A stretch of 64,000 nt of DNA from Heteronotia binoei (Eukaryota), in contig NC_083237.1 in the NCBI RefSeq assembly GCF_032191835.1, forward strand, positions 21,886,001 to 21,950,000, given 5' to 3'. Under the pieces are notes generated by a model. It was given only the letters and a program-made list of their open reading frames with translations. It searched no databases and was not told the DNA's origin. Positions within the stretch are counted from its first letter, which is position 1; every line of letters begins with the position of its first letter. Position numbers and translations under genes: made by a program. This document shows positions 32,428-56,900 of the stretch, piece after piece.

Positions 32428-32543
32428 ATGTGCCCCACCTTGAGCACCCAATCCAGGTGGAAGGGAATCAACATGCCCGGTACTTCACTGACAAGAAGAC
32501 AGCATTCAAGAGTGTCACTGTCCCTTATGAAAGTCCTGAGGTT
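32428..32543 (+). CDS. Candidate upstream exon of gene B
   Basis: ttttggcag| acceptor; donor after 32540 or 32543 followed by a G-run; open in phase 0-2 (MCPTLSTQ...) and phase 1-0 (DVPHLEHP...). Frame unresolved. Confidence 0.3.
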
Positions 32544-33145: not shown

Positions 33146-33255
33146 GAAGGATCATTGTACACCATCATCCTGTACAGATTTATGTGCCTACGTGGCTGTG
33201 TTTCGTGCACATGTTGGCAGAATTTCTTGATAGTGATCACTCTTGAATCCCAGAA
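33146..33255 (+). CDS. Candidate upstream exon of gene B
   Basis: tctgtctctgcag|GAA ... CAG AA|gtgagt; only the phase 0-2 frame is open, compatible with the 37002 exon. Could be non-coding. Confidence 0.3.
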
Positions 33256-33999: not shown

Positions 34000-36500
34000 A
34001 TGACGGGATCAGGCGGTGCCAGGATGCCAACTTGTCCAGTTGTTTGAGATGCTTTTCTGTTTATTTGGTCTGAGGATATGGACAGGATCCTCAAGTTTGA
34101 GGCCTACCACCTGCTTGTATGACCCTTGCCCTTCTTGATGAATTAAATCTGTGGGGTGAGGGGGCTGAATGACTGGGTTGGAGAAGTAGTTAATGCTTCT
34201 GTAAGAGAGGAGGTGGTCGCCCCAGCCTCGAAACAGACTGTGGTCATTGTTCCCTTTAAGCTGAGTTAGTGTGAGCTAGCTCACAATTGTTTAGCCTCCA
34301 GCTTACACATTTTTGTCTCAGCTCAGGAAGAATGGCCCCAAAGCAAACTCATTTATGCAGTAGCTCACAACTTGAATGCTGGTAGCTCACAAAATAATTC
34401 TTTTGCTCACAAGACTCCACAGCTTAGAGGGGGCATTGACTGTGGTGTGTCCATTTCTAAAGAAGCATGCACCCTGGATCCAGGAGATGTCCATAATTAT
34501 TGACTGGTCTCAGCTGTGCCATTCTTGGGCAAGATGATTTAACTCCAAGCCTTCCTGTTTAGATCCCTTCCAATCTAGCTTTAGGCCTGGTTAGGCAAAA
34601 GATGAGATGGCTGGACAGCGTTACTGATGTAATTAACATGAATTTAAGTGGACTTCAGAGGGTGGTGGAAGACAGGAGGGCCTGGCGTGACTTGGTCCAT
34701 GGGGTCGCAGAGTGGGACTCGACTGTGTGACTGAACAACAACAATGGACTGAAACAGTCTTGGTCGGCCTGGTGGTTGACGTGCTGGGAAATAGACGGGG
34801 AGTGTGACTCCTCAGCTTCTCATGGCATCTTTCTTGACTGCCTATCTGGGTTGGGATTGAGAGGCATCATTATACAGAGGTGCCACTGCTGTCTGGAGGG
34901 AAGGTTTCAGGAGGTAATGCTGGGGGACTGCTGCTCAGCCCCTTGGCCAGTGGGGCCCCACAAGGTTCCATCTTATCCCCTGTGCTCTTTAATATTGATA
35001 TGAAACTGCTGGGTGAGGCCACCCAGAGATATGGGTTCAATGGTGTGCTGGAGCAGGTTCTTACTGGGTTGCAAGAGCCAATTGTTAGATTTTCACAAAT
35101 TTTGCAAGCTGGTTGAAAATTCTTCGGCATGCATGTATGCTTGAGCTTTGCCTCCAGATGGCACCAAGCAATGGCCAAAACCTACAAGCAGTATCAAGAG
35201 ACATGCTGCGAAATGTGGCTATGCTGCAGAAATAAAGAGATTCCTTGCTAGAGTGAGTGCAGGTCCGTGAGGCACGTAGGGCTGTAAAGCTGTCCCATGG
35301 GTGGGAAGAGCACTGTATCTGTGCCTCAGGGGTGGACTGGATGGCCAAAATGAAGAAACAGGTCTGTAGTCTGGGGGTGCTCTTGGACCCAGGTCAACTG
35401 CTGGATAAGCAGATGGCAGTTGTGGCCAGGAGTGCCTTTTACCAGCTTTGACTGGTTAGCTGGATGCTGCCTTTCTTTTGCAGACAAGATTAGGCCACAG
35501 TGGTGCATGTCCTGTTTAAATCTAGACTGATACTGCAGTAGCAGTTGCTCTGCCAGCGGGTTTTCTGCTTTCCCCGGATCAAGCGATTGATTCCCTACCA
35601 GTTGCTGCACAGTCAGTGGCTCCCTCCAATTTCCCTCACGTCTTCTTGATTGCTAAAAAAACAATTGGCGGGAACTGAGGGTGGCCATGCAGCAACTGGT
35701 AGGGAATTGATCCCTTAATCTGAGGAAAGCAGTAGTCTGGGGGCAGACCGACTGCACTGTGGAATGAGTCCTAGTTTAGATTACTGCAGTATGCTGTACA
35801 TGGGGCTGCTTTAGAAAAATCTTTGGAAACTTTTAGTTGGTACGGAATGCTGCAGTCAGGATGCTTACTGGAGTGGGTTGTGGGGGCCATATCATCCCAG
35901 TCTTGGCTCATTTATACTAGCTCCCAGTTTGTTTTTGGGCACAATTCAAGGTGCTAGTCTTTACCTTCAAAACCCTATATGGTTTGAGGTCAACATAGCT
36001 TGAGTGTTACCTACTACTCACCAACCACTGTGGTCATTTTTGGAGGCGCTGGTTCAGGTGCCCTTGTCGTCTGAGAACAGGTGGGTGGCAACCTTGGAAG
36101 GGCCTTCTCAGTCATGGCACCAAAGCTCTGGAACTCTCTCCTTAAGGAGATTTATTTGTCGCCTTCCATTGCCATCTTGGGCCAGCAGGTGAAGACTTTT
36201 GTGTTTGGTTTGGCATTCCATCAGTGCTCTCTCCTTCCTTGAGCAGTATTTAACAGCTGGTTTTATGTCTTTGTACACATTTTAATTCTGTTTCTAATTG
36301 TTTTAATGATGTGTGTTTTGGAGGAACTGATTTTAATGGTTTTAAAATGGGGTTCTATCATGTATGTCTTGTTTGTTTTAGTATTTTTTGTTAGTTTTAG
36401 TATTGTTAGCTGCCTTGGTAGCCTTTGTGAGGGCAGAGTGATGGAATATAAATTTTGTAAAATAAAATACAGAAAAACAGAAAATGTGTAAAATAAAGAG
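34000..36500 (+). mobile_element. Old degraded L2 LINE (interrupted)
   Basis: Remnants such as SGAPQGSILSPVLFNIDM (34880-35116) and SLGVLLDP; many stops. Confidence 0.7.
34595..34745 (+). mobile_element. RTE/BovB LINE 3' end fragment
   Basis: gatgagatggctggac...ggagggcctggcgtg...tccatggggtcgc...gactgaacaacaac matches the BovB 3' terminus as recalled. Confidence 0.75.
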
Positions 36501-36598
36501 GATGTATGAACTGTGCAAAAGTAAGCTGTACCCTCTTAAACATCCTTCTACAGGGACACCTTTGCTGTTTTGCTTATTATTGTTAGTATATAATGGAT

Positions 36599-36920
36599 CA
36601 GGGGTGGCCAAACTTGGTTAACATAAGAGCCACATAGAATACATTTCAGATGTTTGAGAGCCACAAAAAATGAATGTCAGATGTTTGAGAGCAGGAAGGA
36701 AGGAAGGCAAATAGATTGGGGGAAGGAGAAAGGAAGAGATGGAAAGAAAGCAAATTTAAATCCATTCTCCAAGCCACTAGCTGGATTGGTTTGGAGAAGT
36801 GATTTAAAAAGACAAATGCCTTCTGCAAACTGGTTGATAGGATAGTGGGGGCTTCAAGAGCCACGCAATATGTATGAAAGAGCCACATGGGGCTCCTGAG
36901 CCGCAGTTTGGTCACCCCTG
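36599..36920. mobile_element. hAT-like MITE
   Basis: TIRs CAGGGGTGGCCAAAC / GTTTGGTCACCCCTG; flanks TAATGGAT / TAATAGAC (6 of 8 match, degraded 8-bp TSD). Confidence 0.65.
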
Positions 36921-37001
36921 TAATAGACCATCTAATGATGACATGGAATTCATGCTTACACTTTTTTATACTCTCCTCCTGGCTTTTTGTTCTTTTAACA
37001 G

Positions 37002-37093
37002 AGGGCAGATTCTTGGGCGTAGCTGTTTTGAAGTCAGGGTGTCTTCCATGCCCGGATTAGACCTCATGAGAGATGAAGGAAAGGCTTTGGAAG
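37002..37093 (+). CDS. Gene B probable exon preceding the CARD array (alternative ATG at 37048)
   Basis: tttttgttcttttaacag|A GGG ... GAA G|gtacaa; phase 2-1; ...MPGLDLMRDEGKALE; its phase-1 end joins CARD1. Confidence 0.5.
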
Positions 37094-38747: not shown

Positions 38748-38996
38748 AGAAAACTATTGTCTATGAAAACCAGTTGGAGCTGATACGCTGCGTCTCTAAT
38801 GTACCTGAAGTCTTGCATGAATTGGTTGGTGATGTTTTGAACAGGGCTCAATACAAAGACATTATGTGTGAGCCCACAGATGTGTTAAGGATGCAGAAGT
38901 TGTTTGAGGAGGTGTTGATAAGGAATGAGAGATATCAAGTCTGTTTCTACCTGGTGCTACAGAAGACAAACCGGGGTCTTACGAACAAACTGTTTG
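38748..38996 (+). CDS. Gene B CARD exon 1 (most divergent)
   Basis: ttttatag|AG AAA ... TTT G|gtaagc; 249 nt, phase 1-1; KTIVYENQLELIRCVSNVPEVLHELVGDVLNRAQY...RMQKLF. Confidence 0.78.
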
Positions 38997-41900
38997 GTAA
39001 GCCAATGTGTGAGTTTGAAATAGATTTAAAAAATGAATGCAAGAAAATAAAGGCTTCATGTTCAGCTAAATAATCTTCCTCCCCAAAATCAGCTTTTCTG
39101 GTTTTGGGCTATGCAGTCCATGAACTGTATTATCTCTTAATTTATTTATTATTTATGTATTTTTGCCCTTCCCGGAAAAGGACTCAGGGCAGATCACAAC
39201 AGATAATAGGCAACACTATATAAACACATTAATAGGCAGTTAAAGCAAATTTTAAAACATAATTTAAATTTATATTAGATCTTGCTCAAGACTAAATGGA
39301 CTTCCCTAGGGCCAGGAATAGTCAGCAGATCATGATTAGCAGAGAACAGAGCTCATATGGAGAGAGGTGGTCCCTCAGGTATGTTGGTCCCAGGCTGCAC
39401 AAGGCTTCAAAGGTCAGTACCAGTGCCTTGAAGCAGATCCAGTAATAGGTAGTCACTGCAGTTGGCGTAGGGCTGTGCCTGCACAGGCAGCAGGTGTGCT
39501 GCCACATCTTGCATGAACTGGAGTTTCCAAATCAACCACAAGGGCAAGACTGAGTAAAGCAAGTTACAGTAATCAAACCTGGAAGTGCCCTTTGCATGGG
39601 TTACTGTAGCCAAGTCCGGAGACAGGTAGGGAGCCAACTGCCTGATATGCTGAAGGTGATAAAAGGTGGACCTGGCAACTGTGGCGACTTTGGCCGCTGT
39701 AGAAACTGAGGCATCCAAGACCACCCCCAGGCTCCTCACTCTCTGGGCTGGCAGAAGTAATGTGCCATCCAAGGTAGGGAGCCTGATTCCTGACTCAGCC
39801 CCACCCCCCTCAGATACAGGACCTCTGTCTTCAATGGATTAAGTTTCAGCCAACTCTGCTGCAGCCTCCAGTGCCGTGGTCAGATTTTCTGGATCGGAGA
39901 AAGAGCTGGGTGTAATTAGCATACTGGTGGCAACCCAGTTCAAACTCTCAGACCAGCTGGGCAAGAGGGCACATATAGATGCTGAATTACATTAGACTAG
40001 AGAATCACCCCTGCGGCACTCCACATTAAAGTGGGTATCGTGGGGAGACTCCCTCACTAAGTGCCACCCTTTGTCCCCAATAGCGGAGAAAGGAGGAAAG
40101 TCATTGTAAGGCAGACCCCTGAACTCCTATCTCAGCAAGGCGGTGGGTCAAAAAATCATAGTCAACCATGTTGAACTTTGCTGTCAAATCTAAAAGTAGC
40201 AGCAGAGCTGCCCCACCCCGCCTCAGGACCACCCATCCTTGTTGCTCAGATCTTGACAGCAACCACGGTTTTTACTCTTGATATGACTCAGATCCTACTG
40301 CCCTTCAAGCAGGCTGTTCACATGCCATCCAAGTCTCTTTCTGTCCCTTCAGACTTCTTGGAATCCAAATCCACCCATCAGGGCTTGAGCACCTCGTACT
40401 AAGCTGGTCACTATTCTGGTTGTGAGGTTTCCATCACCTCCACCTGTCAGCAGCATCCATATAGCTGCTTGAGGTTGACAGTCAATCCCTTGATTCCCAA
40501 TTGCCATCCTACCGTGAGGGTCATTGGGATCAGGCATGAGAGAGATACTCATTGGAGTCAAGGTTTCCCTCTCCTCACCACCATTATTTGCACCACCATC
40601 AATCAAAGCATTTCTGATCTCAGTCTCCATCTTGACCCACTCATAGACCCCCATGGTGATTCCCACCAATGTATAGCTCTTCTAAGAGATAAAGGTAATT
40701 AGTGCTACCCAGAGGTCTTTCTGTTATACTTCTTTAAGGATTACTCCCCAAGTTTATCCGCAGAGAGACAATGGCTTTGATGCAGCAGTGGGCAAGTGGA
40801 ACTATAAACAGACTTAGCTCAGTTCTACTTGCCTTAGAGCTTGTGCAGCATCTAGGGCTTTCCTTCCTATGTGTTATAGTGTTCCAAAAATTGTTTGCAC
40901 AAGAGCCTGTGCAAGTGGAAATGCAAATGGGGGTACAATATATCTTACTTAGCACAAGTGGCTACCACTATCCTTTTTATGAGTTTTTACTTGCACAAGA
41001 ACTCTAGCACAAGTGGAAGTTCTGCGCTAGATCCAACCCATGGGACATGCTGGGTTGAGATTAAGCTGGACTCACAGTTTGCAGTTCTAGTTGAGTGGTA
41101 CAGATCCAAATCCTATGAGAACATTTATCTGTAACTTTTCTAATATTTTGCTTCCTAGGAGGACATTTTTTGGAACGGCACCAAAAAAAACTGATTGAAA
41201 AAGTCTCTAGGATGGGCATTGTATTACCTCGACTATTAGGTTTTGTCCTGAATGATGATGACTATCACTGCATTGGGACTGAGAAGACAGATGCGGGCAA
41301 GATGGCGAAGTTATTTGAGTTGATGCCAGGATGGGACAGAGCACAGAAGGATCAACTCTACCAGGAGCTGATTGAAACAAATGGGCTTCTTATCACATCC
41401 CTTGAGGGTAAAATGAATAGCATGAGAAAAACCTTACCATCACTGGGTGGATAGATTTCCATGTGACAGTGGTAATTTACTGTGGCACACATGTTATGAC
41501 TTGGGAAGCTGGCTGCATTGGTGGCTACAGATCACTCATTTCATCACATGTTTGTACCTGGTGTGCAGTAAAATCCTCCTAAGGAAGGAGAAAAAATTAT
41601 TTGGGGGTATTGCATTGAATCCAGTAATTTGCAGCCATTGATTGTTTCAGATCATTCCCACCTTCTCCTCCTCCCCAGCAGCCCCTTCTAAGCACCCCAT
41701 GAAGGCTGCACAACAGTAATGTGCATGAGTGTGTAACCCAAAGACCTTCCTGTTTGCAATAGCACACCCGGGTGTCTATTAGCCTACCCACTCAGTCCCT
41801 TCCTGCTCTGAGCTGCAAGATAAAAGGTGAACTAGGAATGAGGAGTGGGTGGGAACTGAGTCCAATCTGCCAAACTCACAAACAGACGTAGCTGTAGAGC

Positions 41901-44900
41901 AATCCACATGCTTATTCAACAGCACCAGGAACCTGGCAAGCTGGTCAGATTAATGGGAATGCCATCTCTCTCCTTCCAGCGAGCTTCCTGTGCCTTTGCA
42001 AGGAGTACTAAAAGACTACATGGCCATGAGAGGGGCATGGGTATTGGGGGGTCAAGCTATTTTTGAGCAGGTTGTGATGGCGCAGTAGCTAGGTGAGACT
42101 GAGATAGTTCGCAGCCCCCACAATAGAGCAGTAAGATGGCCTTGGTCACAGAAGCCATACATCCTGTTGTAGACTGAGCAGATGGGTGACAATTGACTTG
42201 GGAACGGGGTTCTTCCTGGGCCTTCACTTCATGAATGGCTGCCTGTTGAGGGTCCAGAGACACACAAAGGCAGGAATTGGGCTCCAAAGTTCTCTGCGTG
42301 GTGCTCAGGCAGGGTCTGCACCTCTCTTCTATCATGGGTGATGGATGGGGTAGCTATAGCTTGTTGGAGGATTATGTAACAGCTTAAAAACAAGGGGTAT
42401 TTTTTTCCAGCCAAAGCAGAAGAGTATGAAAGACAACCAGAAGTGTATGAGGCTTACAGTTCTCCATTCATGTCTAACGGTAAGGACAGAAGTCTGTACA
42501 ATAAGATCTTTGACCATCAGCGTGTTGTGCTAACAGACCATTGGATTCTCCCATTGTTCTAGTCTTCTGTTGATGGATGGGGATAGCAATGGCCTTGTTG
42601 GAAGATCATGTATGTTATTGTTTAAAAACAAGGGGATTTGTATACCCAGCCATGGAATGGATGGCACATTTACAAAACCAACACATGATAAATTGGATGG
42701 ATTTGAATAATGCATCTATGTTTGACAATAAGGACATAAGCACAACATACAAAATTTCCCCATTCACAAGAAGTAAGCTCCTACTCTATTGCAGCATTAG
42801 CTGATATTCTAAAAGACGTTAATGAGACAGTGTACTGGATTGGATCCAGGAATCTGCAGGAGCCGACAGTCACAGATCTTCACTTCCCCCACTTCCAGCT
42901 CTCCAGGATCTAAGGCTGAAGTCTTTCACATCACCTACAACCTGATTCCTTTATGCAGGGGTTGTTTTTTAGAAAAAAAGGTGGTGGAACTCATCCAGGG
43001 ATTATTATCCAGCTGCACATACTATTAAATGGACAAGGAAGTGGAACTCTCAGAGGAGGAGGAACTCTCAGAAAGGTTCAGGAGCTGAGCTCCTGTGAGC
43101 CCTCACTGAATCTGAGGCCTGCCTTTAGGTAGAGACACTGAGGAGTGAACCTGGCATCTTCTGCATACCAAAAGATGCTCCACTACTGAGCCATAACCCT
43201 TTCCAGAAGGGTATTTATTATTAATGTTACAAAGTGTGAGGCAGAGAAATGAGATCCACCTGGAAATTGATACTCTACTAATCCAGTGAAAAATGAATGG
43301 GAACCCCTCCCCTTGGAGTATGTGCAACATTGTTTTCCCACCTAAATCAACTGAGAGAGCACACCTTCATTCCCTCAGTTTATTCTTCACCAACATTTCA
43401 TGAAGATCGTTACTGTATAGCTCCATCCGTGAGTTTTTTCATGTGGAGATTTTCTTTTTCAGAACTCTCTGAAGAATTGCCTTTGAGACCATACTGCCAC
43501 TTCTGAAAAAACCCTTTCCAAAAAATGTCCCAAGTCTGGATGGGAACCTACAGAACCACCACCAAAGGTCCTTTGGGTTGAGCATCCTGTTTCCCAGAGT
43601 ACAGCCCCAGCAAACCCACAAGCAGGGCAGGACACCCTGGTTCAAATCTGCATTGTGAACTTATGGTTTCTGTTTTGGAACTGTTTATTTATTTAAGGCA
43701 TGATGCAGCCACATTTGAACACTTATAATGCCATCAATGGATGGGACTTGAAAATACTTTTCTATATTTATTCAACACACTTTTATCTTCCTGTAAGGAG
43801 CTCAAGACAGCGGACATAATTTTTCCTGTCCTCCATTTTGTCAGTGCAACAGCCCTGAGAGGTAGGCTAGGCTGAGAGAGGAAGACAGACTCAAGGCCAG
43901 GCAGCAAGTGTCATAGCCAGTGGGGCATTGAATCTGGGTTTCCACACACTCAGTCCAATGCTTTGACCACTATACTACACCCAAATCTCTTTGGCTGGAT
44001 TTTGGCCTTGCATAGACAAAACTGTATCATGGAGTTGAATGCCCTTATGGAGGATTAAAAAGGGAAGAGCTGTGTTGGTTTTACAATCTCCAATGTGCAT
44101 GAACTACTGGATGTATTTTATCATATTTTTTTTCCCTAGGGGAACATTTTGTTGAGAGGCACCAAGAAGAACTGATTCGCTGTGCTGTAGGCGTGGATGT
44201 TATAGTAGAATCTCTGGAGATCTGTGCTGTGATAACATTTAATCAAATGCAAGACATCGGAGGTACCAGTCAACAACGAATGCAGAAACTGTATAAATTG
44301 ATGCCAAAGTGGACAACTTCCCAAAAGGATCAGATGTGTGAAATCCTGAGATGCACAAACAGACGACTTCTTATGCAACTTGAAGGTAAATTAACTGAAG
44401 AGTGTCTATACATCCCTAGGCGATTGCATCCTCTATCCAGACTGGAAAAAAGCCTGTTGCCAGTTCCTTGTCTACCAATATGCAACCTGGGCTCCTCCAG
44501 GGGCCCCCACAGCACTAGCTAACATGCAGAGAGTGTGTGGGATCTTGTGATTTCCCCAGGCTGTACTTGTCGACAGTTAAACATACCTTCACTTTGCAAA
44601 ATCATTGAGAGAAAAGTAGGCATTTTTCCTTTAACTCTGAGGTCCTACCGCTGTCTGACCCATGATAAAAAGCAAAGACAAAAAATCAGGATGGATACTA
44701 CCATGTTATTTATTTTTAAGTATATCCCAGTTTTCCTTCCAAAGGGAACCAGAGTCTCACAACAACAAAGCAAAAATACAGCATAAAACGAACAAAGCCT
44801 TTATAGTTTCTGGAGTTAAAAGCTATACTTTGCAGTAGATTTCTGTAATTGTGCTATTTTTTTCTACGAAGCATGCTTCAAAGGTATGGTACAAAAGTAC

Positions 44901-47900
44901 TGTGTAACTAGCAGTTCTGGGTGGAAGTGGCGTAATAAGAAAATGAAAATGAAAAACTACAAACTGCATTTGCAGGGAATGATGTATGGAAGAAGAGGTA
45001 TGTGTTGATAGCATAATGATGGCTAAGGTAAGAGAGAATTATATAACCCTTGTTTTCTCTCCTACTGTTTGCTATCTCTGACTGCTTTTTACTATCTGCT
45101 TGTATCACAGTATTCTAAAATTAAGGCACTACATTTAGGGATAATTATTTATAATTCACCCAGCTCACTAAGATATGCAATATAAGAACAGCCCTGGTGG
45201 GTCAGACCAATTGTCCATCTAGGCCAGCATCCTGTCTCACACAGTGGTCAGCCAGTTCTTCTGGAGGGCCAACCATAGGGCATAGAGGCTGAGGCCTTCA
45301 CTGTTGTCGCCTCCTGACTCTGGGATTCTGAGGATTACTGCATCTGAATGTGGGAGTTTCCCTCAGTCATGATAAACAGTCGGTTTTTTCTCCATTGGAC
45401 CTGTGATATGTAAAATTGTGTAGAATATGCTTGTATTGTCTATATAAACCAAAATGGTAATAACAAATAAACTATGTCTTGGGCTGATTGGGACTCAATA
45501 GCTGGTTCACTGGCAAGCCACAGGCTAAGGGCTGAAGGGACAACATATATCCTTTTTCTCAGGGGGCTTTGTTTTGCATCCAAGGCTTCATGGCTGTGGA
45601 CGTGCCCAAATTTTATAGTACCTATGTGGAAAGGAAGGCACATTTAGTCCAGATGGATCTCAGCTACTGTTGACTTTCTGTCTTACATTCATATTCATTT
45701 TTTTTATTCTAAAAACTTTTATCCTGCTTTTCTGCTCTGATCAGAGCCACCAAGGTGGCTAACAGATTAAAAACACATAATAAAAACAGATCTTAAAAAC
45801 CATTTAAAAAACTACTTCAGACCAAGCAACAATACACATACATAAAAACAACAATTAAATCGTAGGGCAGGAATGGTGGATCACTAAGGAAACCAGAAAA
45901 AATGAAAAAGTCCACTGGCAGTAAAAGGGGACCGATGAGTCTCCCTGGAGAGAGGGCTCCAGAGATTGATGCTGCAACCGTGAATACCCTCTACTGGGTT
46001 GCCACCTGCCTAATCTCAGAAGGTGGAAGCGCCCAAAGTACCCAAAGATGAATATAGTGGTTGGGTGGGTTTGTAAGGAAGTTGGCGGTCTTTCAGGTAA
46101 GCTAGTCCCAATCCATATAGGGCTTTCAAGCACAGTACCATTACCTTGAGTTGATTGGAAACTCATGTAGATGGGCCAAGAGTAGAGTGATATGGTCCTT
46201 AAAACCAACTCCAGTCAATTTCCTGTCTGCAGCAATCTGTACCAACCGAAGTTTCCAAACACTTTTCAAGGGCATCTGCATGCAGAGTGCATGTATTATA
46301 TGTACTGTTACCCAACTCAGTCACAATCAGTTGGCTTATGCTGGTATCCATCCTGTACACTGAAAGCAAAGAATAAGAATACACTGAGGAATAGGTTTGT
46401 TTCAGAACTCTCCACCAGGACCACCTCTCCTTGCTTCAGGAACAGAGAAATTTTTCCACAGTGTGTGCTCCAGGCTGTCTTCATAGTTTACACAAGGATT
46501 GACAGCTTTTTAGAGACAGTTGCTTTGTGTCAGCTGGTGTCCCTGTCATGACCCTCATTTTAAAGCCTGCAAGTTGAGATGGGTCAGCACCATATTCCCT
46601 GAGCATGCTAAAACCTATGAATGATGTTTTCATATATCCCTTTTCCCAGGGGGCCATTTTGTGGACAGACATCTGGAGGAGCTCATCGAACAAGTGACAG
46701 TGGTTCCCCTAAACCTAAACCTGCTTCTTAGGTTGGCACTGGATGAGGTGCAAGATGTGACTGACTCGCAATGCACCACAGAGAAGATGCAAATGAAAGC
46801 CCTGTTCCAGATGGTGCAGGAGTTGAAGAGGCAGCAGAAAGATGAGCTGTACCAAGACTTGGTGGAAACAAATCCAAATGTTGTCAAAGTTCTAGAGGGT
46901 AAGTTTAGAGGCAGCCTTCACTGCTGTGTCTTTCTGAAGCTTAATTTCATTGGAACAACACTTGAGGTGAACAAAAAACTCTGCCTTGTACTGATTCTAA
47001 CCATCTGCTTTTAACAGGTAGCACTTTTCCTGGATCTTAGCAGGGGTAAGGAAAACTTTCTGTTGATGGACAGAATCCAGGCTGGGTTGGTCTTCTCAGT
47101 TTCTCTGCAGCCAGAACACACACAAATCAGCAGTGTGTTTCTTCCAGCAAGTGGAGGAAGGACGCAGGTGGAGGAAAGAGGCTCTAGTGCTGTCTGCTCC
47201 ACAGCTCGATGTTCTGAGATTCTCTCCTCCACTTTTAAATTCCCCATCTCTAGTTATTTCCCTTTTGAATCTTTTCTCCTTGTCTAATGTCATCATCTTG
47301 ACCAAAGCATGATTAACAGGTACCAATAGAAGAAATCTACAAGGCGGCAATGTGGATATCCATTTCTATTTTTCTTCATCGTTTCAAAATTAATAGTAAT
47401 GTATCTGCTAAGTTAATTTGAGAATGAATGAGCTTCAGCAAGTCCGATCACCCTGACCCTTTTTCATTGGATTGAGTTGCTCAACCCATCTAGAGTGTGG
47501 ACCCTGGGTTGGATCCAAGCTGCTGTTTTTCAGCATTCTCAGATCCACCACCAGAGAGCAGAACACTGGAATTTCTTATTAGTGGATGGAGGGAATTGAG
47601 CTCCACACAGAATTCTTTTGTTAGCAGCACTGCCCTGAACTGAAAAGTTAGCCTGATAGCAATTCTTCCTGAGCTAGCTGGCTTTTTTCAGCCTGTTTTT
47701 CTCATGCTAAAATATTTGCACAGTTTGCAGTGTACAGTTTTAGTTAGCATATGGTGATACTTCCATTACATGTCCCAGAACTGGGCTAAATATGAAACTA
47801 ATTTACATAACCCTATCGACAGACCTAGTGAGAACATTCACTCACTCCAGGACATACTCCATCCATTAAGTAAACTTCTGTGGTTAGTCCTACATTCTTT

Positions 47901-50900
47901 CCTGAAAATACAACAACTGAAGTTGTGATATGTTTCTTGCCAGAGGAACACTTTATCGAAAAACATGAGGAAGAAGTGATTTGGCGAACCTGTAGGGTCA
48001 ACACTGTCTTGCGGTGGCTCCATGATCCACATTTGCAGTGGATCACAGAGGATCAACATTCCTTGATAAAGGCAGATTCAGACCATCAGAAAATGCGTGA
48101 CTTGTACAAGCTGGTGCCAAAATGGAATAGGAAGCAGAAGGACCATCTTTACGCTGTGCTGAAGAAAACAAATGGACCCCTGATTGCTGACCTTGAAGGT
48201 AACATGATCTCTTCGTAATGTTGATTGAGGAGCTGACAAACTTTGGACAGGGCCTAGGCCTGGTGGTTCTTCCTTGTGCCTTGCGTGAAACTGTTGGAGC
48301 AACAACAGTGGTTGGCATAGTGAGTTGTGGGTGAGGTGGCAACTGGTGGGAGGTTTGGGGGCAGGGAAATGGGGACCATAATGACACATATGTCACTTCA
48401 AGTGGAAACATGTACATGACATAGGATAGCTGTAGGAATCAGGAATTCTTAGAGCTACCCTCTATCACTTCTGGGTTTTTACTGGAAATGACTAGTTTTT
48501 CAAATTTTTCTTTTATTGCCACTTGGAGTAGCAGTGGGCAACTGAATCTTGGGGTGGGGGATCCCCTGCTCCAATCAGGGGACTGGCAAGCTCCAATCAG
48601 AGGACTATTCTGTTCTGTAGTCAGGGCTTGCTAGGCTGTGCTTTTAGGTTTGTAAAAGGTAGTCCCCTGTGCAAGCACCAGTCATTTCCAACTCTGGGGT
48701 GACGTTGCTTTCACAACGTTTTCATGGCAGACTTTTACAAGTCTTTTTCAAGGCAGACTGCCTTCCCCAGTCATCTACATTTCCCCCCCAGCAAGCTGGG
48801 TACTCATTTTACCGACTTCAGAAGGATGGAAGGCTGAGTCGACCTGATCTGGTTACCTGAAACCAGCTTCCGCCTGGATCGAACTCAGGTCGTGAGCAGA
48901 GGGTTCAGACTGCAGTACTGCAGCATTACCACTCTGCGCCACGGTTTGTAGGATACCCCAAAATCACTCATGATAAATATAGGATGTTAACCAAGATGGT
49001 GGCTCCATAGCAAGGCAATGATAGACTTGCAGCATCCCTCACTCTGAAGAACCAAGATCCCTGGCAGTCTTTTTGAAACATCATTTCCTGGGGCATAAAT
49101 GCTGGTCACATGTCTACACCATTTCCTGTGAACCAGTGAGATCCAAAGACCATGAGGCATGCCTAGCTTAATTGCTAGCAAATACCAGCATCTTTACATG
49201 GGATTCTTTTCCACAGGTAGGCTTATTACTACCTTCAGCATTATCTTTAGCCGTGCTCTACTGGAACTGGGGCTAATTGGCTGAGATTTAGCTGTGTGGA
49301 CCTGAGACGTGTGATAGAATGAAAAAGGGCAAATAGAAGAAATTCACAGGGTTCTGTAAAGATTTGATATCTCCTCACCATGCATATCCCAGCCACCCAA
49401 TTCACTACATAGTTGGGATTCAGATGTGGGAGTAGTTGCCTGAATGATTATATTTGCCTTGAAACCGTCCAAGGGCCAGATGTCTGGTATTTCTCTTTTC
49501 TCAGAGGGGCACTTTGTTGAGAGGCACAAGGAGTACTTGATGAAAAGCATCACTGGAGTAAGAACAGTTGCATCCTCGTTAAGGAAACAGTTTACAATCA
49601 CCCATCGTCTGTATGCTGGCATCTTGAGGAAGGACACAACCAAGGAAATAATGGAGGCGATCTATGAAATGGTGCCAAGCTGGAATGGAGAACAGAAGAA
49701 TAATCTATACCGGGCATTCAGGAGGCAAAATGCATCCCTGATCAAGGAACTTGAGAGTAAGTGTGAGGACTCCCAACTCACAGCTATGACTGAGGCACTG
49801 ATTGGCATCTTCATTTGCACAGTCGCCATTTAGAGTATGAAGCGAAGATGCCTCACAATTCCTTCGCTACACAAAGCAAAAATCATAAGTAGCAGAAGTA
49901 CTTTCTCAGTCATGCCTATGTCTGTCTGTGTGTCTGTCTGTCTCTCTCTCTCTCATCCACACCCCAACATTCACCAATTGACATGGAAGATACTGTATAT
50001 AACAATATTGCCTTACTGTTTAAATATGAAAACGAATAATTTAAATCAGCTTGTCCCCACTGCTATGCCACATTTCATTCTGGACAATTAAGGACTCCTA
50101 ACAGCCTCAGCTGCCTGTTTCACAACTTTCTATGTTATGAGTTTGTCTGTATCAGCCTTGGAAGGTGTTCTGTCTGGAAAGTCAGTAAGCTTCAGAACTT
50201 TGATGTGTATTTCATTAGTCAAAAAGTAACAATACTTCAGTTGGTGGGTATATTAATATGTTCATATTGTAATTTCATTGTTGGGAACCTAGCATGCAAA
50301 TCATTATTTGTGTGAATGATTTATTTATTTATTTTATGATTTGTATCCCGCCCTTCCCACAAGTGGCTCAGGGCGGCTCACAACAAGTGATTGAACATAA
50401 TTTAAACTAACATTTAAAATATAAAAATTAAACATTCAAGAATTTAAAACCTAAAAACATTAGACAATACAGCAATGTGCATAACAAAGCTACATGGTAA
50501 GCTACCTATCATTTCCCGTATCAGTTAGATGTAGACTAGGTGTAAGCTAGCCGGAAGAGGGTTGTCTTACAGGCCCTGCGGAACTCAATAAGGTCCCGCA
50601 GGGCCCTCACCTCCTCCGGCAGCTGATTCCACCATGTAGGGGCCATAACAGAGAAGGCCCTGTCCCTAGTTGATTTTAGGCGGGCTTCTTTTGGCCCAGG
50701 GATAGCGAGAAGATTTTGAGTTCCCGACCTCAGCACTCTCTGGGGAACATGTGGGGAGAGACGGTCTTTCAGGTAGGCAGGTCCCAGGCCATATAGGGCT
50801 TTAAAGGTAATGACCAGCACCTTGTACCGAACTCGGTATATTATTGGAAGCCAGTGCAGAGCCCGAAGACCCGCCGAATGTGCCCCCACCTTGGGAGGCC

Positions 50901-53900
50901 CAATAACAGCCGGGCCGCGGCATTCTGCACCAGTTTAGTTTAATTAATTAATTAATGATTAAGGTAGATTCTTCTCCCTTTCTATTGCCAGCAGTGCCTT
51001 ATATAATGTCTTTGGGCCACAGCTGTGCCATCGTTTATAACAGGATGCACATTTCTGTTAAGACTAAAAACAAAGCAGGAAAAAGGGAGACACTGAACTA
51101 CAAGGTGCAGAAGCTTGGTATGCAATTAGAAATTTGTTTTGTCTGACATCTCAGGAATTGCAGTGCAGACTTCACCGTACTTATGGTGAAATTTTTATTA
51201 CATTTGCAATTTAATCTCTTTATGGGACAGGTTGGAAAACTATAGAAAATGGCTTAATTCCCAACTGGCTTGCAGAGAAATGCAGCTTATGTAAGAAAGA
51301 GCAGGTAAGTGCCTGGGTTCCCTGCTGAAGGGAACATACTAGAACAAGAGGTGGCTGTAGTGGGAGTTCTTGGTTTTCTTCCTGGCAAAAATTGGTGAGT
51401 GATGAATAGAGGAGTAAAACAGACATGAGGTAGACATTGGGAATCAAGGCTTGGGACCTGTCTTCAGTAGGTAGAATGGAATATGATCATTACACAGTTA
51501 ACTTGCTACTTTGAACTAATGGAACTTGGTAACTCTTTTTTCATATCTCCCCCACTCCCTTGCTTCTGTGGTTGGGGAGGGAAAGAGAACTCAAGGTAGC
51601 TGCAGATTTCTGTTGGAGGCCTTGCTGATTCCAGCAAAAATTCAACTGTCCCATTGTATGTATGTAAGCCAGAAATATGATCAATATCAAGCCTACAGAT
51701 TCCCAAATCTGGCTTTACAAGTTATAATAACAATCTCCTGTTGCCCAGGGTTTTTCAGAGATCCAACCAGAGCTTGTTCCAGATGCTGAAGGAAAGCTGA
51801 AGACATACAGGTGAGGGTTGAGAGTAACCATCTTGGATTAGCTGAGATTCTTTTGTCAGTTTCACCTCTTTGAGATCAAAGTATAGCCTTAGTAGACCTG
51901 ACTACTTTCCCCTCCCTTTTCCAACTGCAGAAGCCAATGGAATCTTTTCAGTAGAGAAACAGACTCAGGCCAGACTGGTTAAAGGATCTTTCAAGGACCT
52001 AAATAATGAACTGTATGTGTTAACTTGCAAATTAGTTCTGTTTCTGATGCATCTGGCTTATTAGTTGTTGGCAAACTGTCCTCTCCTCTGTTCTGTTCAG
52101 TATCAGCTTACAAATTTGCCTACCATGAGGTTTGCCAAGTAACACTTAGATATACTTCCACTTAGGCCTCAGATTCAGTGGGAGCTTACAGGAGCGCAGC
52201 TCCTGAAGCTTTCTGAGAGTTCCACCTCCTCCTGAGAGTTCCACCTCCTTGTCCATTGAATAGTATGTGCAGCTGCATAACAATCACTGGATGAGCTCCA
52301 CCACCTATTTTTCTACAAAATGACCCCTGCTTCCGCTGTATGAATATAGGAGAAACTTTATTGAACTGCTACAGGTACAAGACCCCATCCTTAGACAAGG
52401 CCTGCCAGAAGGGTACATGGATAGTATAGACACCCACTAAATAGTCCAGGAAAACGTGGGCTTTCCCCTCCCCTCCCAGGCCCCATTAATTGCTTACAGT
52501 ACAGCTTAACCCCCCCAGTAGCTCAGTAGGTCACAAGGAATGACATTGGAAAAGCAAAAACCATGGCAGAAGACATTGCATGGGTCCTGACACTTATAAA
52601 CTTTCACAGATTACATGGGAAAAGGATATCTTTTTCTGAGAGCTCATTCAAGCTTTGCTTAAAACTTTTGCCTCTTCTTTGTGGTCTCTGTGCAGTCCAC
52701 ACACTTAGGTAAAGGGCCTGAGTGTGCCCAGACTGAGAATTGTAGAGCTCTGTCAAAAGCTTTTTGGCATGCTTTCTCCCTGCCCTGGGGAGCAGGTTCA
52801 CTCTGCTCATGCCTGGAGCTGAGGGAAAAGGCACCATCCACTCAGTTCCTTTTTGGTTTTTAGTATTGCCTGAGATAGAGGCATTGCTCCCAAGACCAGT
52901 GCTGTTCCTCTCATAGCTATCAATGGTACATTCATCATGGAGCATATGGCTCTTCTATGAGCCCCTGGGGCTCCCTTGTCCATTCATCAACATAATTGAG
53001 ATCGACATCCTCTTTGCTATCATCAGCGCTCGTCCTTCTGCTCCCAGTGGGCACATTGGCTGCCTTCCTACTCTCCCTCCGTCTCTCCTCGTTGGCATCC
53101 ATGTCACTCCAGATCTTGAACCCAGTTGTCAGATCTGAGGCTTTGATCATTGCCATGCACTGACTGGTACTGACACCGCCGGCCTCTGAGGAATGATCGC
53201 TGTTCTCCCTCCTTAGACTCGGCAGTTCTTCTACATACTGATGGTTCCGTGCCTATGACTGTACATGGCAACATACCAAGACTGCCTCTTCGGCCCCACC
53301 ACCGAAATAACTCCGCAAACTTGCCGGATTTTGGATGCCCGTGCCATCCCACCATTGGGCCCTGACTACATTGCACTTACCTTTCCAGAACCAACCAACA
53401 CTGGAACTGAAGATTCCAGTTCCAAAGGGGACAAACTACTTTGCTCCCACCATCTGAAGTTTTTTTGGAGTTTATCTGACATATGGCGACTCTCCTCCAG
53501 ATATGGGTGGCTATGGATGCCCTGAAGGTCACTGGTGTGGTCCAGCCTTTCTTCCAGTGAGACCTACTGCCATCTGCCATACTTCCTATGCTACCAGTCC
53601 ATCTGGAAACCTATGAAGAAGTGTGGAATAAGCCAGCATTGGTAGCGTCAGTACTGAAATGTTATGAAGTAATCTACTGGATCCAGTCTTGAAACCCAAG
53701 GCTTATTTGTTTGGATATTTATCTCACCCTTCCCTGCAGGGCTCAGGGCAGCTCACAACAGATTAAAAATACAGATAAAACAATAAAAACATTCTGCAGT
53801 TCAATAACTTAATATACTGAGATGCCCAGGATTTTAAAAGGGCTGTTGACAAACACCCCCACAATTACTGAATAAGCTAGGTCAGCGATGGGGGTATGGA

Positions 53901-56900
53901 GCAGGGGAGTCCAGAATCCTTTACCTGTCAGCTCACTAATCACCTGGTGTGTGGCCTGCACAGAGACCATGAAGAAGATAAATAGGTTGTTTACCTGTCA
54001 CCTATGATCTTCGAGTCATCATCTGTGCAATCGTGTGTGCCCACCCAGCCTTTCCTACTGCTGGCATTTCCTTTTCACTTACCTTGAGTTTTTTTATTTA
54101 CCAGTGGTACACAGAAGGAACTGAGTGGGAGGCGAGTTTTCCCTCAGCTCTAGGTATGCATGGTTAATGCCTGCTTCCCAAAGCTGAGGGAAGGCCCACC
54201 AAAAATAAGAGAGCTCTAGAATTTTCCTGACGAAGGTCCAGTGCAGGCACAGAACCCAGTGTGCGACTGCAGAGATGACCACTTGAAGGTTACAGGCATA
54301 GGTTACAGGGAAGCAACCAGTTTTTCCCTGGGACCCTAGAAACTACTCTTTTAAGTCTGTTTCTGAATAATGTGGATTATAAATGGTGTAAATAAATTAA
54401 TAATTTTAGCATAACATTGTTTGAGCTTTACTTAGGGCCTGCAAGACCTTCCTCTTCCGACTGGCCTTCGCTGAAGAAAGAAGCTGCTAAGGATAACCGC
54501 CACCACAAAAGAACGAATAGCAATAGCACTTTTATTAATTTAATTTATTTGATTGATTTTAAACTTGTCAGAATTTTGATTGCTGGATGTAACTTTGTTT
54601 TTATATAATGCTGTTAGCCGCCCTGAGCCTGCTCCGGCGGGGAGGGCGGGATACAAATAAAAATTATCTGTCTATAAAAAAAATTATCTATAACTTAGGA
54701 TTTAGGGCAGGGGTCTCCCAGCAGATACCTCGTGAACTCCTGGTAGCTCGCCAGCTGCTGCAGAGTAGCTTGGCATCCTCTAGAAGACTTAGGAAAACAT
54801 CTGTCTAAGCTTTTATTCTTTGAAATGAATATATACACACGCACACACAATGTCATAAAAGTGAGTACACCCCCTCACATTTTGTAAATATTTAAGTTTA
54901 TCTTTTCATGTGACAACACTAAAGAAATGACACTTGGCTACAATGTAAAGTAGTGAGTCTACAGCTTGTATAACTGTGTAAATGTGCTGTCCACTCAAAG
55001 TTACGCAACACACAGGCATTAATGTCTAAACCGCTGGCAACAAAAGTGAGTACATCCCTAAGTGATAATGTCCAAATGGGGCCTGAAGTGTCAATATTTT
55101 GTGTGGGCACCATTATTTTCCAGCACTGCCTTAATGCTCTTGTGCATAGAGTTCACCAGAGCTTCACAGGTTCCCACTGGAGTCCTCTTCCACTACTCCA
55201 TGACGACGTCACGTAGCTGGTGGATGCTAGAGACCTTGCGCACCTCCACCTTCCGTTTCAGGATGCCCCACAGATGCTCAATAGGGTTTCGGTCTGGAAA
55301 CATGCTTGGCCAGTCCATCACCTTTACCCTCAGCCTCTTTCGCAAGGCAGTGGTCGTTTTGGAGGTGTGTTTGGGGTCGTTATTCATGTTGGAATACTGC
55401 CCTGCGGCCCAGTCTCTGAAGGGAAGGGATCATGCTCTGCTTTAGTATGTCACAGTACATGTTGGCATTCATGGTTCCCTCAATGAACTGTAGCTCCCCA
55501 GTGCCAGCAGTACTCATGCAGGCCCAGACCATGACATTGCTACAGAGGTTGAAGGGGTGGGGGGTCAGCCTGTCAGTGCTCAGACCATATGCCGCACGCT
55601 GCATCAAATTGATCTGCAGGGCTGTCGTCCCAGAAGGAAGTCTCTTCTAAAGATGATGCACAAGAAAGCCCGCAAACAGTTTGCTGCAGACAAGCAGACT
55701 AAGGACAGGGATTTCTGGAACCATGTCCTGTGGTCCGATGAGACCAAAATACACTTATTTGATTCAGATGGTGTCAAGCGTGTGTGGTGGCAACCAGGTG
55801 AGGAGTACAAAGACAAGTGTGTCTTGCCTACAGTCAAGCGTGGTGGGAATGTCATGGTCTGGGGCTGCAGTTCATTTAGACATTAATGGCTGTGTGTTGC
55901 ATAATTTTGAGCAGACAGCACATTTACACTGTTATACAAGCTGTAGACTCACTACTTTACATTGTAGCCAAGTGTCATTTCTTCAGTGTTGTCACATGAA
56001 AAGATATACTTAAATATTTACAAAATGTGAGGGGGTGTACTCACTTCTGTGATATGTTGAGTGTGTGTGTGCGCATATAAATTTCTCTATCTGCTGCTTA
56101 ATTGGTAGCTTCATTTCTGGTGTTTGTAGTCCATGTTTTGGTCTGCTTTGAAAGAAATTTTCTGAGTTATACGGTTCTAAGCAAACTCATGTGATTTCTG
56201 GAGTACCCTCTTCTTGAATTTGTGTAAGCAAAGATACGTTTGAACCCCTTGAGAAGCTGACTGGGCCATTTCTGCCTCTTTTGTTCCTTGTGACATGCAG
56301 AATTCACCTCCCCTGGGGAGGCTCTTTCCAGTGCTCCATTACCAAACTCAAATTTGATGTAACGGCAGCTGTGACTATCGAATATGCATATTGCTCCTGG
56401 GATCAGCACCTGAGCATAGCTGAAATGCAGACGTGGATGGTAGCTGGACCGCTGTTTGAGATCTGGGCAGATGTTGAAGAGAATGTGGCAGTTGTTTACC
56501 TTCCTCATTTTTTGTGTCTACAAGGTAAGGCAGCATTGAGAACAAAAACAGGTAGTAAGGATTGCATTTTCTCAAGCAGCCACATTTTTAGACAGATTGA
56601 CTCTGTGTGCGAGAAAAGGTTTGCCCCCTAAGTACTTGTGAAAAAGGGGATGTAGTCCCTCTAAAACATCATGTCAGATACAACCAATCATAGTTCCATT
56701 TGTTTCATCACTACTACCATCCCTGTCACACATACACCAAAAAAACTTCTGCAAGTCGTTAAAGAGATTTGCATTACTGAGGCAGATGGACAGAGATGGC
56801 CCATCCATTAGGTACACCTAGGTGGATTCCTAGGGCACCAGAGCAGGTGTGTGTGTGTGTGGGGGGGGAAGAGGCTCAAGACTACAAGGTAGCTGAAAGA

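Follow-up and report, generated by a model that had tools for sequence, protein, structure and literature searches.

Six internal CARDs of a gecko FIIND gene are predicted to keep the CARD fold without the residues of canonical filament surfaces

CARD8 and NLRP1 carry a ZU5-UPA FIIND with an F-S autoprocessing dipeptide, followed by a CARD; their N-termini differ, being disordered in CARD8 and PYD-NACHT-LRR in NLRP1, and neither has CARDs ahead of the FIIND. Filaments of the ASC CARD are abolished by mutation of R119, N128/E130, D134, R160, W169 or D143/E144 (PMC7830601, PMC7801473), and the initial annotation of the locus described here had rightly stressed R119, E130 and D134 as important in polymerisation. 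INCA/CARD17 does not self-oligomerise, yet it blocks assembly of the caspase-1 CARD and caps caspase-1 filaments (PMC7555848). Together with CARD16/COP and CARD18/ICEBERG it belongs to a set of duplication-derived inflammasome CARDs, some of which regulate rather than propagate filaments.

The window, that is the whole stretch of 64,000 nucleotides from Heteronotia binoei that was analysed, contains a gene ending in a CARD (gene A) and a second gene (gene B, LOC132583310) with six CARD exons, C1 to C6 (Table 1). These translate exactly to aa 211-732 of XP_060110956.1; all are open and in phase 1/1, with polypyrimidine-AG acceptors and G/GTAA-type donors. RNA contigs from reads over positions 44001-50000 are spliced from C3 to C4 (joint 44385/46650, seen in runs X1 and X2) and from C5 to C6 (joint 48198/49505), and in the same interval one contig runs through the C6 donor. 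The public protein model of gene B, at least 757 aa long and with the array CARDs as internal domains, ends in H. binoei by read-through beyond C6. The linkers C1-C2 and C3-C4-C5-C6 are of one residue each, and the motifs at the inter-unit junctions are >90% conserved.

Table 1. Exons of genes A and B in the window (aa, residues of the gene B protein).
Feature	Positions	Strand	aa	Details
Gene A, terminal CARD exon	18573..18853	+		stop codon 18851-18853; Pfam 61.5 bits
Gene B, five 5' exons (start codon and degenerate p53-family DNA-binding domain)	28232-28372, 31380-31553, about 32424-32543, about 33146-33256, about 37000-37093 (span 28232..37093)	+		
CARD exon C1	38748..38996	+	211-292	exact match to P0186; Pfam CARD 30.1 bits
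CARD exon C2	41159..41407	+	294-375	splice sites, Pfam, P0186 match
Linker exon between C2 and C3	42411..42479	+	about 376-399	69 nt, 23 codons, phase 1/1; P0186 match and splice sites
CARD exon C3	44140..44385	+	400-480	splice sites, P0186 match, RNA joint to C4
CARD exon C4	46650..46898	+	482-563	splice sites, RNA joint from C3
CARD exon C5	47944..48198	+	565-648	splice sites, P0186 match, RNA joint to C6
CARD exon C6	49505..49756	+	650-732	splice sites, P0186 match, RNA joint from C5
Two short conserved exons	about 51263-51304, about 51746-51811 (span 51263..51811)	+		71-73% identity to P0202 (tblastn)
Gene B FIIND exons	ZU5 part 56287-56529; ZU5/UPA boundary 57414-57698 (span 56287..57698)	+		

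The six CARDs had been called N-terminal, which is incorrect because about 210 residues of a p53-like domain precede C1; a linker exon, moreover, interrupts the array. This domain, a degenerate p53-type DNA-binding domain at aa 1-210 of XP_060110956.1, adjoins C1 directly, with no tetramerisation domain between the two in the P0186 protein, and its last exon ends in phase 1, compatible with the C1 acceptor. A Pfam P53 match on P0186 aa 30-206 (E 6e-26), matches of the paralogue P0020 to p63/p73/p53 cores in the PDB (E 3e-35) and a Foldseek match to p63/p53 (E 1e-13, from a poor model with pLDDT 55) all point to a homologue of the p53-family DNA-binding domain. In the alignment of P0020 to p63, Zn-ligand and DNA-contact residues are replaced, which we take to be the equivalents of C176, R248/R249, C275, C277 and R280 in p53.

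Downstream of the array, the two short exons connect C6 to the FIIND in the Eublepharis orthologue. Pfam FIIND matches positions 56281-56631 (E 6e-26), and the exon at the ZU5/UPA boundary encodes an F-S dipeptide that aligns with CARD8 F296-S297 and NLRP1 F1212-S1213, so that gene B appears to have a FIIND with a putative autoprocessing site. Exons for the distal UPA and the effector CARD of gene B were not found up to the window end, and homology to gene A extends only to 59252; the Eublepharis orthologue has both the distal UPA and a C-terminal effector CARD, and the orthologue XP_054848441.1 contains P53, six CARD, FIIND, UPA and CARD domains. With the part after C6 deduced from exons further downstream and from the orthologue in Eublepharis, the predicted order is a p53-like domain, six CARDs, ZU5-UPA (FIIND) and an effector CARD, which would make gene B a CARD8/NLRP1-type sensor. 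It shares with CARD8 and NLRP1 the FIIND with its aligned F-S dipeptide, and a canonical CARD follows the UPA in gene A and the orthologues, whereas the six degenerate CARDs and the p53-like domain upstream of the FIIND have no counterpart in either protein.

The array units are, as predicted by modelling, stably folded six-helix CARDs of the NLRP1/ASC subfamily. When single exons were scanned with Pfam CARD, C1 (30.1 bits), C2 (28.3) and C5 (24.8) scored above the cut-off of 23.9, and C6 (22.3) and C4 (19.2) slightly under it; C4 was scanned as a truncated ORF lacking helix 1, as was C3, for which no match was obtained. A profile of all six has the NLRP1 CARD as its closest match (84 bits, E 5e-23), followed by ASC (69 bits), and no caspase-1-type CARD is among its matches to solved structures at E ≤ 0.01. 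The AF2 model of the array (531 residues, 13 aligned sequences; pLDDT 80.3, pTM 0.58) has a pLDDT of 80-93 across all six units, each helical in the CARD pattern. By Foldseek, one unit matches the NLRP1 CARD filament subunit 6xkk_A with a TMt of 0.96 and an rmsd of 0.8 Å, and one unit matches 6n1h_A with a TMt of 0.93. Overall, an array unit resembles the ASC and NLRP1 filament subunits (6n1h, 6xkk) closely (TMt 0.93-0.96, rmsd 0.8-1.2 Å, 38-40% identity, the same hydrophobic core motifs) but has the residues of type I (R119, E130, D134, R160), type II (R125, W169) and type III (D143/E144) replaced unit by unit. The tandem CARDs of RIG-I and MDA5 likewise follow one another head to tail, nearly without a linker, but they belong to another CARD subfamily and the predicted two-domain geometry is off (rmsd 14 Å). 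The RIG-I 2CARD is an activating seed, its tetramer templating MAVS assembly.

The CARD of gene A provides the register for these replacements. It aligns (18575-18850) without gaps to residues 112-193 of full-length human ASC (E 2e-23), and its residue i therefore corresponds to ASC i+103; its match to the human NLRP1 CARD is of similar strength (E 2e-24). It carries R119, R125, E130, D134, Y137, D143, E144, Y146, M159, R160 and W169, including all seven residues named in the initial annotation, has the full type I charge set and 8/8 conserved interface residues, and groups in the post-FIIND effector clade. Its sequence is that of a canonical ASC/NLRP1-type effector CARD.

Residues of C1-C6 were placed by MAFFT and, independently, by HMMER, and the two alignments agree. 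They reproduce all 18 residues first read by hand, namely Q/Q/Q/L/E/K at 119, P/G/D/P/N/R at 130 and H/P/E/N/R/S at 134, as well as the missing Trp in C1 and C4 (R and L at W169), and in the AF2 model these positions sit, as they do in ASC, on helices 1b, 2 and 4 and in the loop joining helices 4 and 5. Proper alignment restores no full type I set: defined as basic residues at 119 and 160 with acidic ones at 130 and 134, it is complete in 0/6 array CARDs. Every interface type is gone in C1, where an acidic pair, E131/E135, lies one residue out of register. C2 has A160 and retains K125, D143/D144 and W169, and C3 combines Q160 with a retained acidic pair (D130/E134). C4 has D146 and keeps K160, C5 retains R125, E144, R160 and W169, and C6 has K119 with E160. 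A basic residue at 125 and an acidic one at 144 occur only in C2 and C5. Scored out of 8, the units reach 1, 4, 3, 1, 4 and 3. Of the 29 positions at which post-FIIND CARDs are ≥70% conserved, 8 belong to the interface and are retained in C1-C6 at 31%, against 75% for the other 21 (Mann-Whitney p = 0.0015).

To call these residues "lost" is inexact: several charges persist (D130/E134 in C3, K160 in C4, R125/R160 in C5, K119 in C6), and the changes are ancient and unit-specific rather than the product of recent decay. Orthology of the units is 1:1 across squamates, C3-C6 being found in geckos, a skink and pythons, and the orthologous units likewise deviate at type I positions. Non-canonical residues specific to a unit are conserved across squamates (Q119/C125 in C1, R187/Q191 in C3, P130 in C4, K119/E160 in C6); C6 invariably has K119 and E160, mostly together with a basic residue at 130, which gives it a partly charge-inverted type I surface. 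In three pairwise comparisons, ω is 0.23-0.28 at core codons, as under purifying selection, and 0.70-0.75 at interface positions against 0.60-0.80 at the other surface; interface-equivalent positions thus drift like the remaining surface, under no special constraint. C1 and C6 reach 0.8-0.9, and no pairwise ω exceeds 1. The effector-type CARD has an overall ω of 0.11, with dN of 0.08 at the interface against 0.27 at its other surface. The description of the units as folded, non-canonical and each with a different surface agrees well with the models, core ω and conserved unit-specific residues; "diversified" fits weakly, because in the sampled squamates the units keep their order and identity.

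The pattern extends beyond gene B. Among amphibian and reptile [CARD]n-FIIND-CARD proteins, counted as 50%-identity representatives that are phylogenetically non-independent, the full type I set occurs in 11/136 pre-FIIND and 35/53 post-FIIND CARDs (Fisher p = 1e-15), and an acidic residue at 134 in 39/136 and 51/53, respectively. A CARD fold kept without the filament-building surface residues is an ancient feature common to a family of proteins, not described before, in reptiles and amphibians. Within this family the array is the constant part and the N-terminal domain the variable one, being p53-like, a PYD, a region without a Pfam domain or, in a turtle model, zinc fingers.

We tentatively favor the view that the array consists of non-polymerising regulatory CARDs, located in the N-terminal portion that a CARD8/NLRP1-type sensor sacrifices and capping the effector CARD in cis. 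As the units lack type I, II and III filament contacts and a full type I set, lone units should neither polymerise nor nucleate ASC/caspase-1 filaments; as the array lies upstream of the F-S site, it would be part of the autoinhibitory fragment. We infer from this an incapacity to polymerise, capping in cis and activation through N-terminal degradation. Most likely, the array would serve as a CARD module that acts in cis and does not propagate. Units with one partly intact surface (the acidic Ib of C3, the type II Trp of C2, C5 and C6) would engage the canonical effector CARD and stop its extension in an INCA-like manner, and the sensor would thereby be kept from signalling until degradation of the N-terminal fragment releases the canonical UPA-CARD. 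The original suggestion of decoys or cappers rather than activators fits the sequence data. Other CARD families polymerise using different residues, and new complementary surfaces on the array could conceivably support polymerisation. A dedicated capping surface might show constraint, yet ω at the interface-equivalent surface is 0.6-0.8. The theme of regulation by duplicated CARDs would be shared with the COPs; these, however, are single-domain proteins of the caspase-1 CARD type confined to humans and higher primates, whereas the array is internal to a large sensor, of NLRP1/ASC type, in a fixed order of six and common to the sampled squamates. CARD-only proteins were ruled out as a description of the array, given its internal domains, the length of the protein and its nearest relatives.

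We consider it unlikely that the array instead serves as bait, its degenerate CARDs mimicking host CARD proteins and being targeted by pathogen effectors able to bind, cleave or ubiquitinate them. Such an attack would destroy the N-terminal fragment and release the effector CARD, with the p53-like domain as an additional bait in the same scaffold. The array does lie in the fragment where NLRP1 and CARD8 hold "tripwire" sequences, and one paper (PMC13037943) describes mouse NLRP1B as an integrated decoy. Like plant NLR-IDs and NLRP1B, gene B pairs a sensor chassis with exchangeable host-like domains, here a p53-like one and in relatives a PYD or zinc fingers, although for both the p53-like domain and the CARDs a decoy role is hypothetical. 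The high surface ω (0.6-0.8), the swapping of N-terminal domains among paralogues, the growth of frog arrays by recent duplication and two paralogous H. binoei loci with 97-100% identity in the p53-like exons and 15-23% divergence in C1-C3 would also suit bait. On the other hand, unit order and identity are 1:1 in geckos, skink and pythons, unlike arms-race turnover, pairwise ω is never >1, and it is the N-terminal domain, not the array, that varies within the family.

It is also doubtful that the array is just a spacer, folded yet functionally inert, or a remnant that is degenerating in this species, with interface residues set free from selection once an effector CARD had been duplicated internally. 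Interface-equivalent positions that evolve as any other surface, the ω of C1 and C6, and an annotated product that ends after C6, with the distal UPA/CARD exons missing from the window, are in line with relaxed constraint, as is C4 of H. binoei. The most derived among its orthologues, it has two additional residues (LN) compared with them, lacks W169, Y146 and R137, all three kept by every orthologue, and has a loop of low pLDDT (model residues 307-319). Against this, all six exons are open with intact splice sites, and C3-C6 are transcribed and spliced; core ω is low in every sampled squamate, and the invariant unit-specific residues of C3, C4 and C6 and the junction motifs are conserved.

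A pre-assembled heterotypic seed, in which co-evolved surfaces would hold the six different CARDs together as a fixed mini-helix, a template for the downstream CARD filament, seems to us improbable: fixed unit order, one-residue linkers, a pTM suggesting some defined inter-domain packing and the partly charge-inverted residues of C6 would be compatible with it, but the match to RIG-I 2CARD is poor, no unit has a complete canonical surface for ASC or caspase-1, and activation in this sensor family destroys the fragment to which the array belongs.

The exon between C2 and C3 was absent from the initial annotation. It is predicted to be disordered (AF2 pLDDT <50 at model residues 174-194) and is also found in Gekko kuhli (P0007).

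We find that the six tandem CARDs of gene B (C1-C6, the array) keep the residues that determine the CARD fold and have selectively lost the conserved contact residues through which CARD filaments form. The reference for this comparison is the terminal CARD of gene A, the upstream FIIND-CARD gene. Its exon (18573-18853) has a stop right behind LEGR and is similar to both the NLRP1 CARD (E 2e-24) and ASC (E 2e-23) of human. Its alignment to residues 112-193 of full-length ASC is gapless, which fixes the numbering such that residue i of 18575-18850 is ASC i+103. The domain carries R119, R125, E130, D134, Y137, D143, E144, Y146, M159, R160 and W169, and since published work gives exactly these residues at the same ASC numbers, the register is valid; the seven that the initial annotation listed as kept (R119, R125, E130, D134, Y137, Y146 and R160) are all present. 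Mutation of R119, N128/E130, D134, R160, W169 or D143/E144 abolishes ASC CARD filaments and the binding of the ASC to the NLRP1 CARD (PMC7830601, PMC7801473).

Residues at ASC-numbered positions in C1-C6 (MAFFT and HMMER alignments agree) and retention of the named residue in CARDs of related proteins behind and ahead of FIIND
ASC residue	C1/C2/C3/C4/C5/C6	Post-FIIND	Pre-FIIND
R119	Q/Q/Q/L/E/K	45/53	67/136
R125	C/K/C/Q/R/S		
E130	P/G/D/P/N/R		
D134	H/P/E/N/R/S	51/53	33/136
E144		49/53	85/136
Y146		47/53	76/136
R160	Q/A/Q/K/R/E	52/53	72/136
W169	R/W/W/L/W/W	46/53	92/136

MAFFT and an independent HMMER alignment both reproduce every array residue first read by hand at positions 119, 130 and 134, as well as the missing Trp of C1 and C4. 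It had been considered that a proper alignment might restore the charged residues; such a register shift is ruled out, as both alignments and the helix placement are concordant, the scored positions lying in the AF2 model where they lie in ASC, on helices 1b, 2 and 4 or in the 4-5 loop. The charges that are retained are the acidic pair D130/E134 of C3, the basic residue 119 of C6, and R125 and R160 of C5; C1 alone has acidic residues one position out of register (E131/E135). Among 29 positions conserved at ≥70% in post-FIIND CARDs, the array retains 31% at the eight literature-defined interface positions versus 75% at the other 21, mostly core, positions (Mann-Whitney p = 0.0015), in agreement with the earlier remark that the core motifs largely persist.

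All six CARD-like open frames lie on the plus strand, in eukaryotic DNA with LINE and LTR insertions, and are bounded in phase 1 throughout by a polypyrimidine-AG acceptor and a G/GTAA-type donor; the limits originally proposed for them are the exon limits that these splice sites set. Their translations are all (6/6) exact substrings of the gene B product XP_060110956.1 (LOC132583310, P0186, 757 aa), the public record that served as the joined protein for folding and alignment. Contigs from two RNA runs contain the GT..AG joints 44385/46650 (C3 to C4) and 48198/49505 (C5 to C6), which shows that the CARD exons are transcribed and spliced in tandem; the RNA evidence covers 44001-50000, and the C1-C2-linker-C3 and C6-to-FIIND junctions are taken from public gene models and conservation. 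The linker exon between C2 and C3, which the original gene model lacked, encodes an acidic and aromatic segment that is predicted to be disordered and is present in Gekko kuhli too. One RNA contig (49690-49911, plus strand) reads through the C6 donor into the intron, as does the public 757-aa model, which ends in this way; this may reflect intron retention, or else an alternative 3' end by which a p53-like protein with six CARDs but no FIIND is made.

Exons of gene B in the window
Feature	Position	Strand	Remarks
5' exons (start codon and p53-like domain)	28232-28372, 31380-31553, ~32424-32543, ~33146-33256, ~37000-37093	+	
CARD exon C1	38748-38996	+	aa 211-292 of XP_060110956.1
CARD exon C2	41159-41407	+	aa 294-375
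Linker exon	42411-42479	+	69 nt, phase 1/1
CARD exon C3	44140-44385	+	aa 400-480
CARD exon C4	46650-46898	+	aa 482-563
CARD exon C5	47944-48198	+	aa 565-648
CARD exon C6	49505-49756	+	aa 650-732
Two short conserved exons	~51263-51304, ~51746-51811	+	downstream of C6
ZU5 exon	56287-56529	+	
ZU5/UPA exon	57414-57698	+	F/S aligned with CARD8 F296/S297 and NLRP1 F1212/S1213

The CARDs had been called N-terminal, but C1 is preceded by roughly 210 residues of p53-family DNA-binding domain, encoded by five exons upstream; the fifth of these has a phase 1 end that matches the C1 acceptor, so that the p53-like domain is in frame with the array. Pfam P53 matches aa 30-206 of XP_060110956.1 (E 6e-26), and p63/p73/p53 cores are matched at E 3e-35 with the paralogue XP_060110952.1 as query. 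The best Foldseek matches are likewise all p63/p73/p53; as the AF2 model of this domain is poor (pLDDT 55), its assignment rests on sequence statistics. The domain is degenerate: in the p63 alignment the zinc-ligand and DNA-contact equivalents of what we take to be p53 residues C176, R248/R249, C275, C277 and R280 are replaced. The fusion to a CARD array is common to Gekko kuhli (partial model) and Eublepharis macularius, whose orthologue XP_054848441.1 reads P53, six CARDs, FIIND, UPA and CARD. It is possible that the domain is an integrated decoy of p53; full-text searches found no published description of a p53-FIIND fusion.

On the 3' side, gene B can be aligned to gene A as far as 59252, where homology ends about 150 bp short of the expected next UPA exon; an AT-rich stretch and then an LTR retroelement (gag/pol ORFs, 60.6-64 kb) follow. 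The distal UPA and effector-CARD exons of gene B were not found up to the window end, which lies in this element, and the end of homology together with the LTR indicates that they have been displaced beyond the window or lost.

The arrangement is not confined to this locus. A six-CARD profile run against 1.84 billion representative proteins gave 762 matches (E ≤ 0.001). Of the 150 matches listed, some 80 have stretches of 2-12 CARDs, and at least 40 proteins carry near-complete CARDs ahead of a single FIIND, most of them with one further CARD behind it. They come from geckos, a skink, an alligator lizard (Elgaria), pythons, turtles, an alligator and many frogs, and all are 'uncharacterized'. 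When 53 post-FIIND and 136 pre-FIIND CARDs were sampled from these relatives, the full type I set, conservative charges counted, was found in 35/53 versus 11/136 (Fisher p = 1e-15), counts that derive from phylogenetically non-independent representatives at 50% identity. Behind FIIND, then, the ASC/NLRP1 contact set is nearly always retained and ahead of it it is not, and the array in the window is a clear case of this rule, which holds across the family. The N-terminal domain varies: gene B has the p53-like one, a paralogue in Eublepharis has a PYD, and a turtle model has zinc fingers. That model, from Chelonia mydas (P0197), has C2H2 zinc fingers between CARD array and FIIND and a C-terminal PYD; the fingers are either another integrated domain or the product of a mis-joined gene model. 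In full-text literature searches no account of CARD arrays ahead of FIIND came up; the nearest published remark is that green anole CARD8 is altered in architecture and ends in a PYD where the CARD would be (PMC11258412). The proteins are already in public annotation, unnamed; what is new is the combination of a putative sensor of the CARD8/NLRP1 type with an array of degenerate CARDs.

In a maximum-likelihood tree of squamate units, C3, C4, C5 and C6 each cluster, with strong support, with the unit that holds the same place in Eublepharis and Tiliqua, C4-C6 with Python units too, and C4 and C5 also with Gekko; C1 and C2 cluster with gecko units, and the gene A CARD with post-FIIND effector CARDs and the first CARD of the Tiliqua model. 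Within one squamate protein, identity between units is only 40-48%. The 5-11 pre-FIIND CARDs of frog proteins (P0004, P0005, P0011, P0014, P0018) are 70-99% identical within a protein, which points to recent tandem duplication, unlike the old, differentiated squamate array, and several frog species have isoforms one CARD unit apart. The non-canonical residues are old, with K119 and E160 of C6, P130 of C4 and Q119/C125 of C1 invariant in their units and position 130 of C6 basic in most orthologues. C4 of H. binoei is unusually derived, having lost W169, Y146 and R137, which its orthologues keep, and having gained relative to all of them a two-residue LN insertion (46720-46735, plus strand) that looks like a 6-nt tandem duplication; it is also the least confidently folded unit.

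Pairwise Nei-Gojobori ω of the pooled array against Gekko kuhli, Eublepharis and the H. binoei paralogue is 0.51-0.58. By codon class, in two interspecies comparisons, it is 0.23-0.28 for the core, 0.70-0.75 for interface-equivalent codons and 0.60-0.80 for other surface; the effector-type CARD has an overall ω of 0.11, with dN of 0.08 at the interface versus 0.27 at other surface. By these estimates the array CARDs are kept folded, and the former interface is now treated like the remaining surface. The structure prediction and superposition that had been proposed return a CARD fold: AF2 on residues 205-735 of XP_060110956.1 (13-sequence alignment, unit register) gave a mean pLDDT of 80.3 and pTM of 0.58, with pLDDT under 50 confined to the chain ends, the linker exon and one loop in C4, and in Foldseek one array unit superposes on the NLRP1-CARD filament subunit 6xkk at 0.8 Å rmsd (TMt 0.96) and matches ASC 6n1h at TMt 0.93. 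A RIG-I-like 2CARD geometry was rejected (two-domain rmsd 14 Å, Foldseek), and the array CARDs were rejected as COPs (CARD-only proteins), being internal domains of a protein of at least 757 aa.

In NLRP1 and CARD8 the proteasome removes the fragment upstream of the F/S site and so frees UPA-CARD, and the array is located upstream of that site. As cis regulators or caps, its CARDs would not polymerize themselves and would engage the effector CARD without extending the filament. This reading draws on INCA/CARD17, which cannot self-oligomerize yet blocks caspase-1 CARD assembly (PMC7555848), and we favor it tentatively, putting its chance a little below even. Alternatively, the array CARDs could be baits for pathogen effectors. 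We regard this as unlikely and prefer cis regulation, since the family keeps the array and the order of its units constant and exchanges the N-terminal domain. An inert or relaxed spacer seems to us just as unlikely as baits. That the array is a heterotypic activating seed we consider very doubtful.

As a rather improbable scenario, we speculate that squamates have a so far undescribed class of FIIND inflammasome sensor, with another form in turtles, crocodilians and frogs. Its N-terminal bait would be exchangeable, in geckos a p53 copy unable to bind DNA, and would be linked to the effector UPA-CARD by ordered, polymerization-dead CARDs acting as a built-in filament cap, such that viral or bacterial factors degrading p53 would destroy bait and cap together and fire the inflammasome. 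If true, this p53-bait/CARD-cap sensor would be a vertebrate integrated-decoy guard of p53, and the array with its preceding p53-like domain is a concrete candidate, open to testing, for a vertebrate inflammasome built on an integrated decoy. Sensing by 'functional degradation' is modeled on NLRP1 and CARD8, and the role of their N-terminal regions is an active question; the gene B locus shows a naturally occurring form of that region made up of folded CARDs whose filament contacts are gone, a design conserved unit by unit in squamates and found again, with copy numbers that vary, in amphibians, turtles and an alligator. C1-C6 are furthermore natural CARD surface variants for asking which contacts permit capping versus propagation.

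A second copy of the 3' part of gene A and the 5' part of gene B lies on the same chromosome (L001, CM063339.1:21814432-21865758, versus window 5739-45008). It is 95-98% identical to the window up to CARD1; further on, around CARD2 and CARD3, identity is only 80-85% and the introns differ in size. At the protein level the p53-like exons are 97-100% and C1-C3 77-85% identical. XP_060110952.1 (P0020) was considered as the product of the locus in the window and rejected, as it belongs to L001 and XP_060110956.1 is the true product. Its N-terminus joins the gene A CARD to the p53-like exons through a GC-rich exon that is coding in that record (23362-23559, plus strand), a join made impossible in the window by an in-frame stop in this exon, which is probably 5' UTR of gene B, the N-terminus of XP_060110952.1 thus being a read-through chimera. 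Finally, a half-CARD open frame (12408-12572, plus strand), whose identity to effector CARDs over their first half is 63-65%, is placed between the UPA exons and the real CARD exon of gene A and is probably a pseudo-exon left over from duplication.
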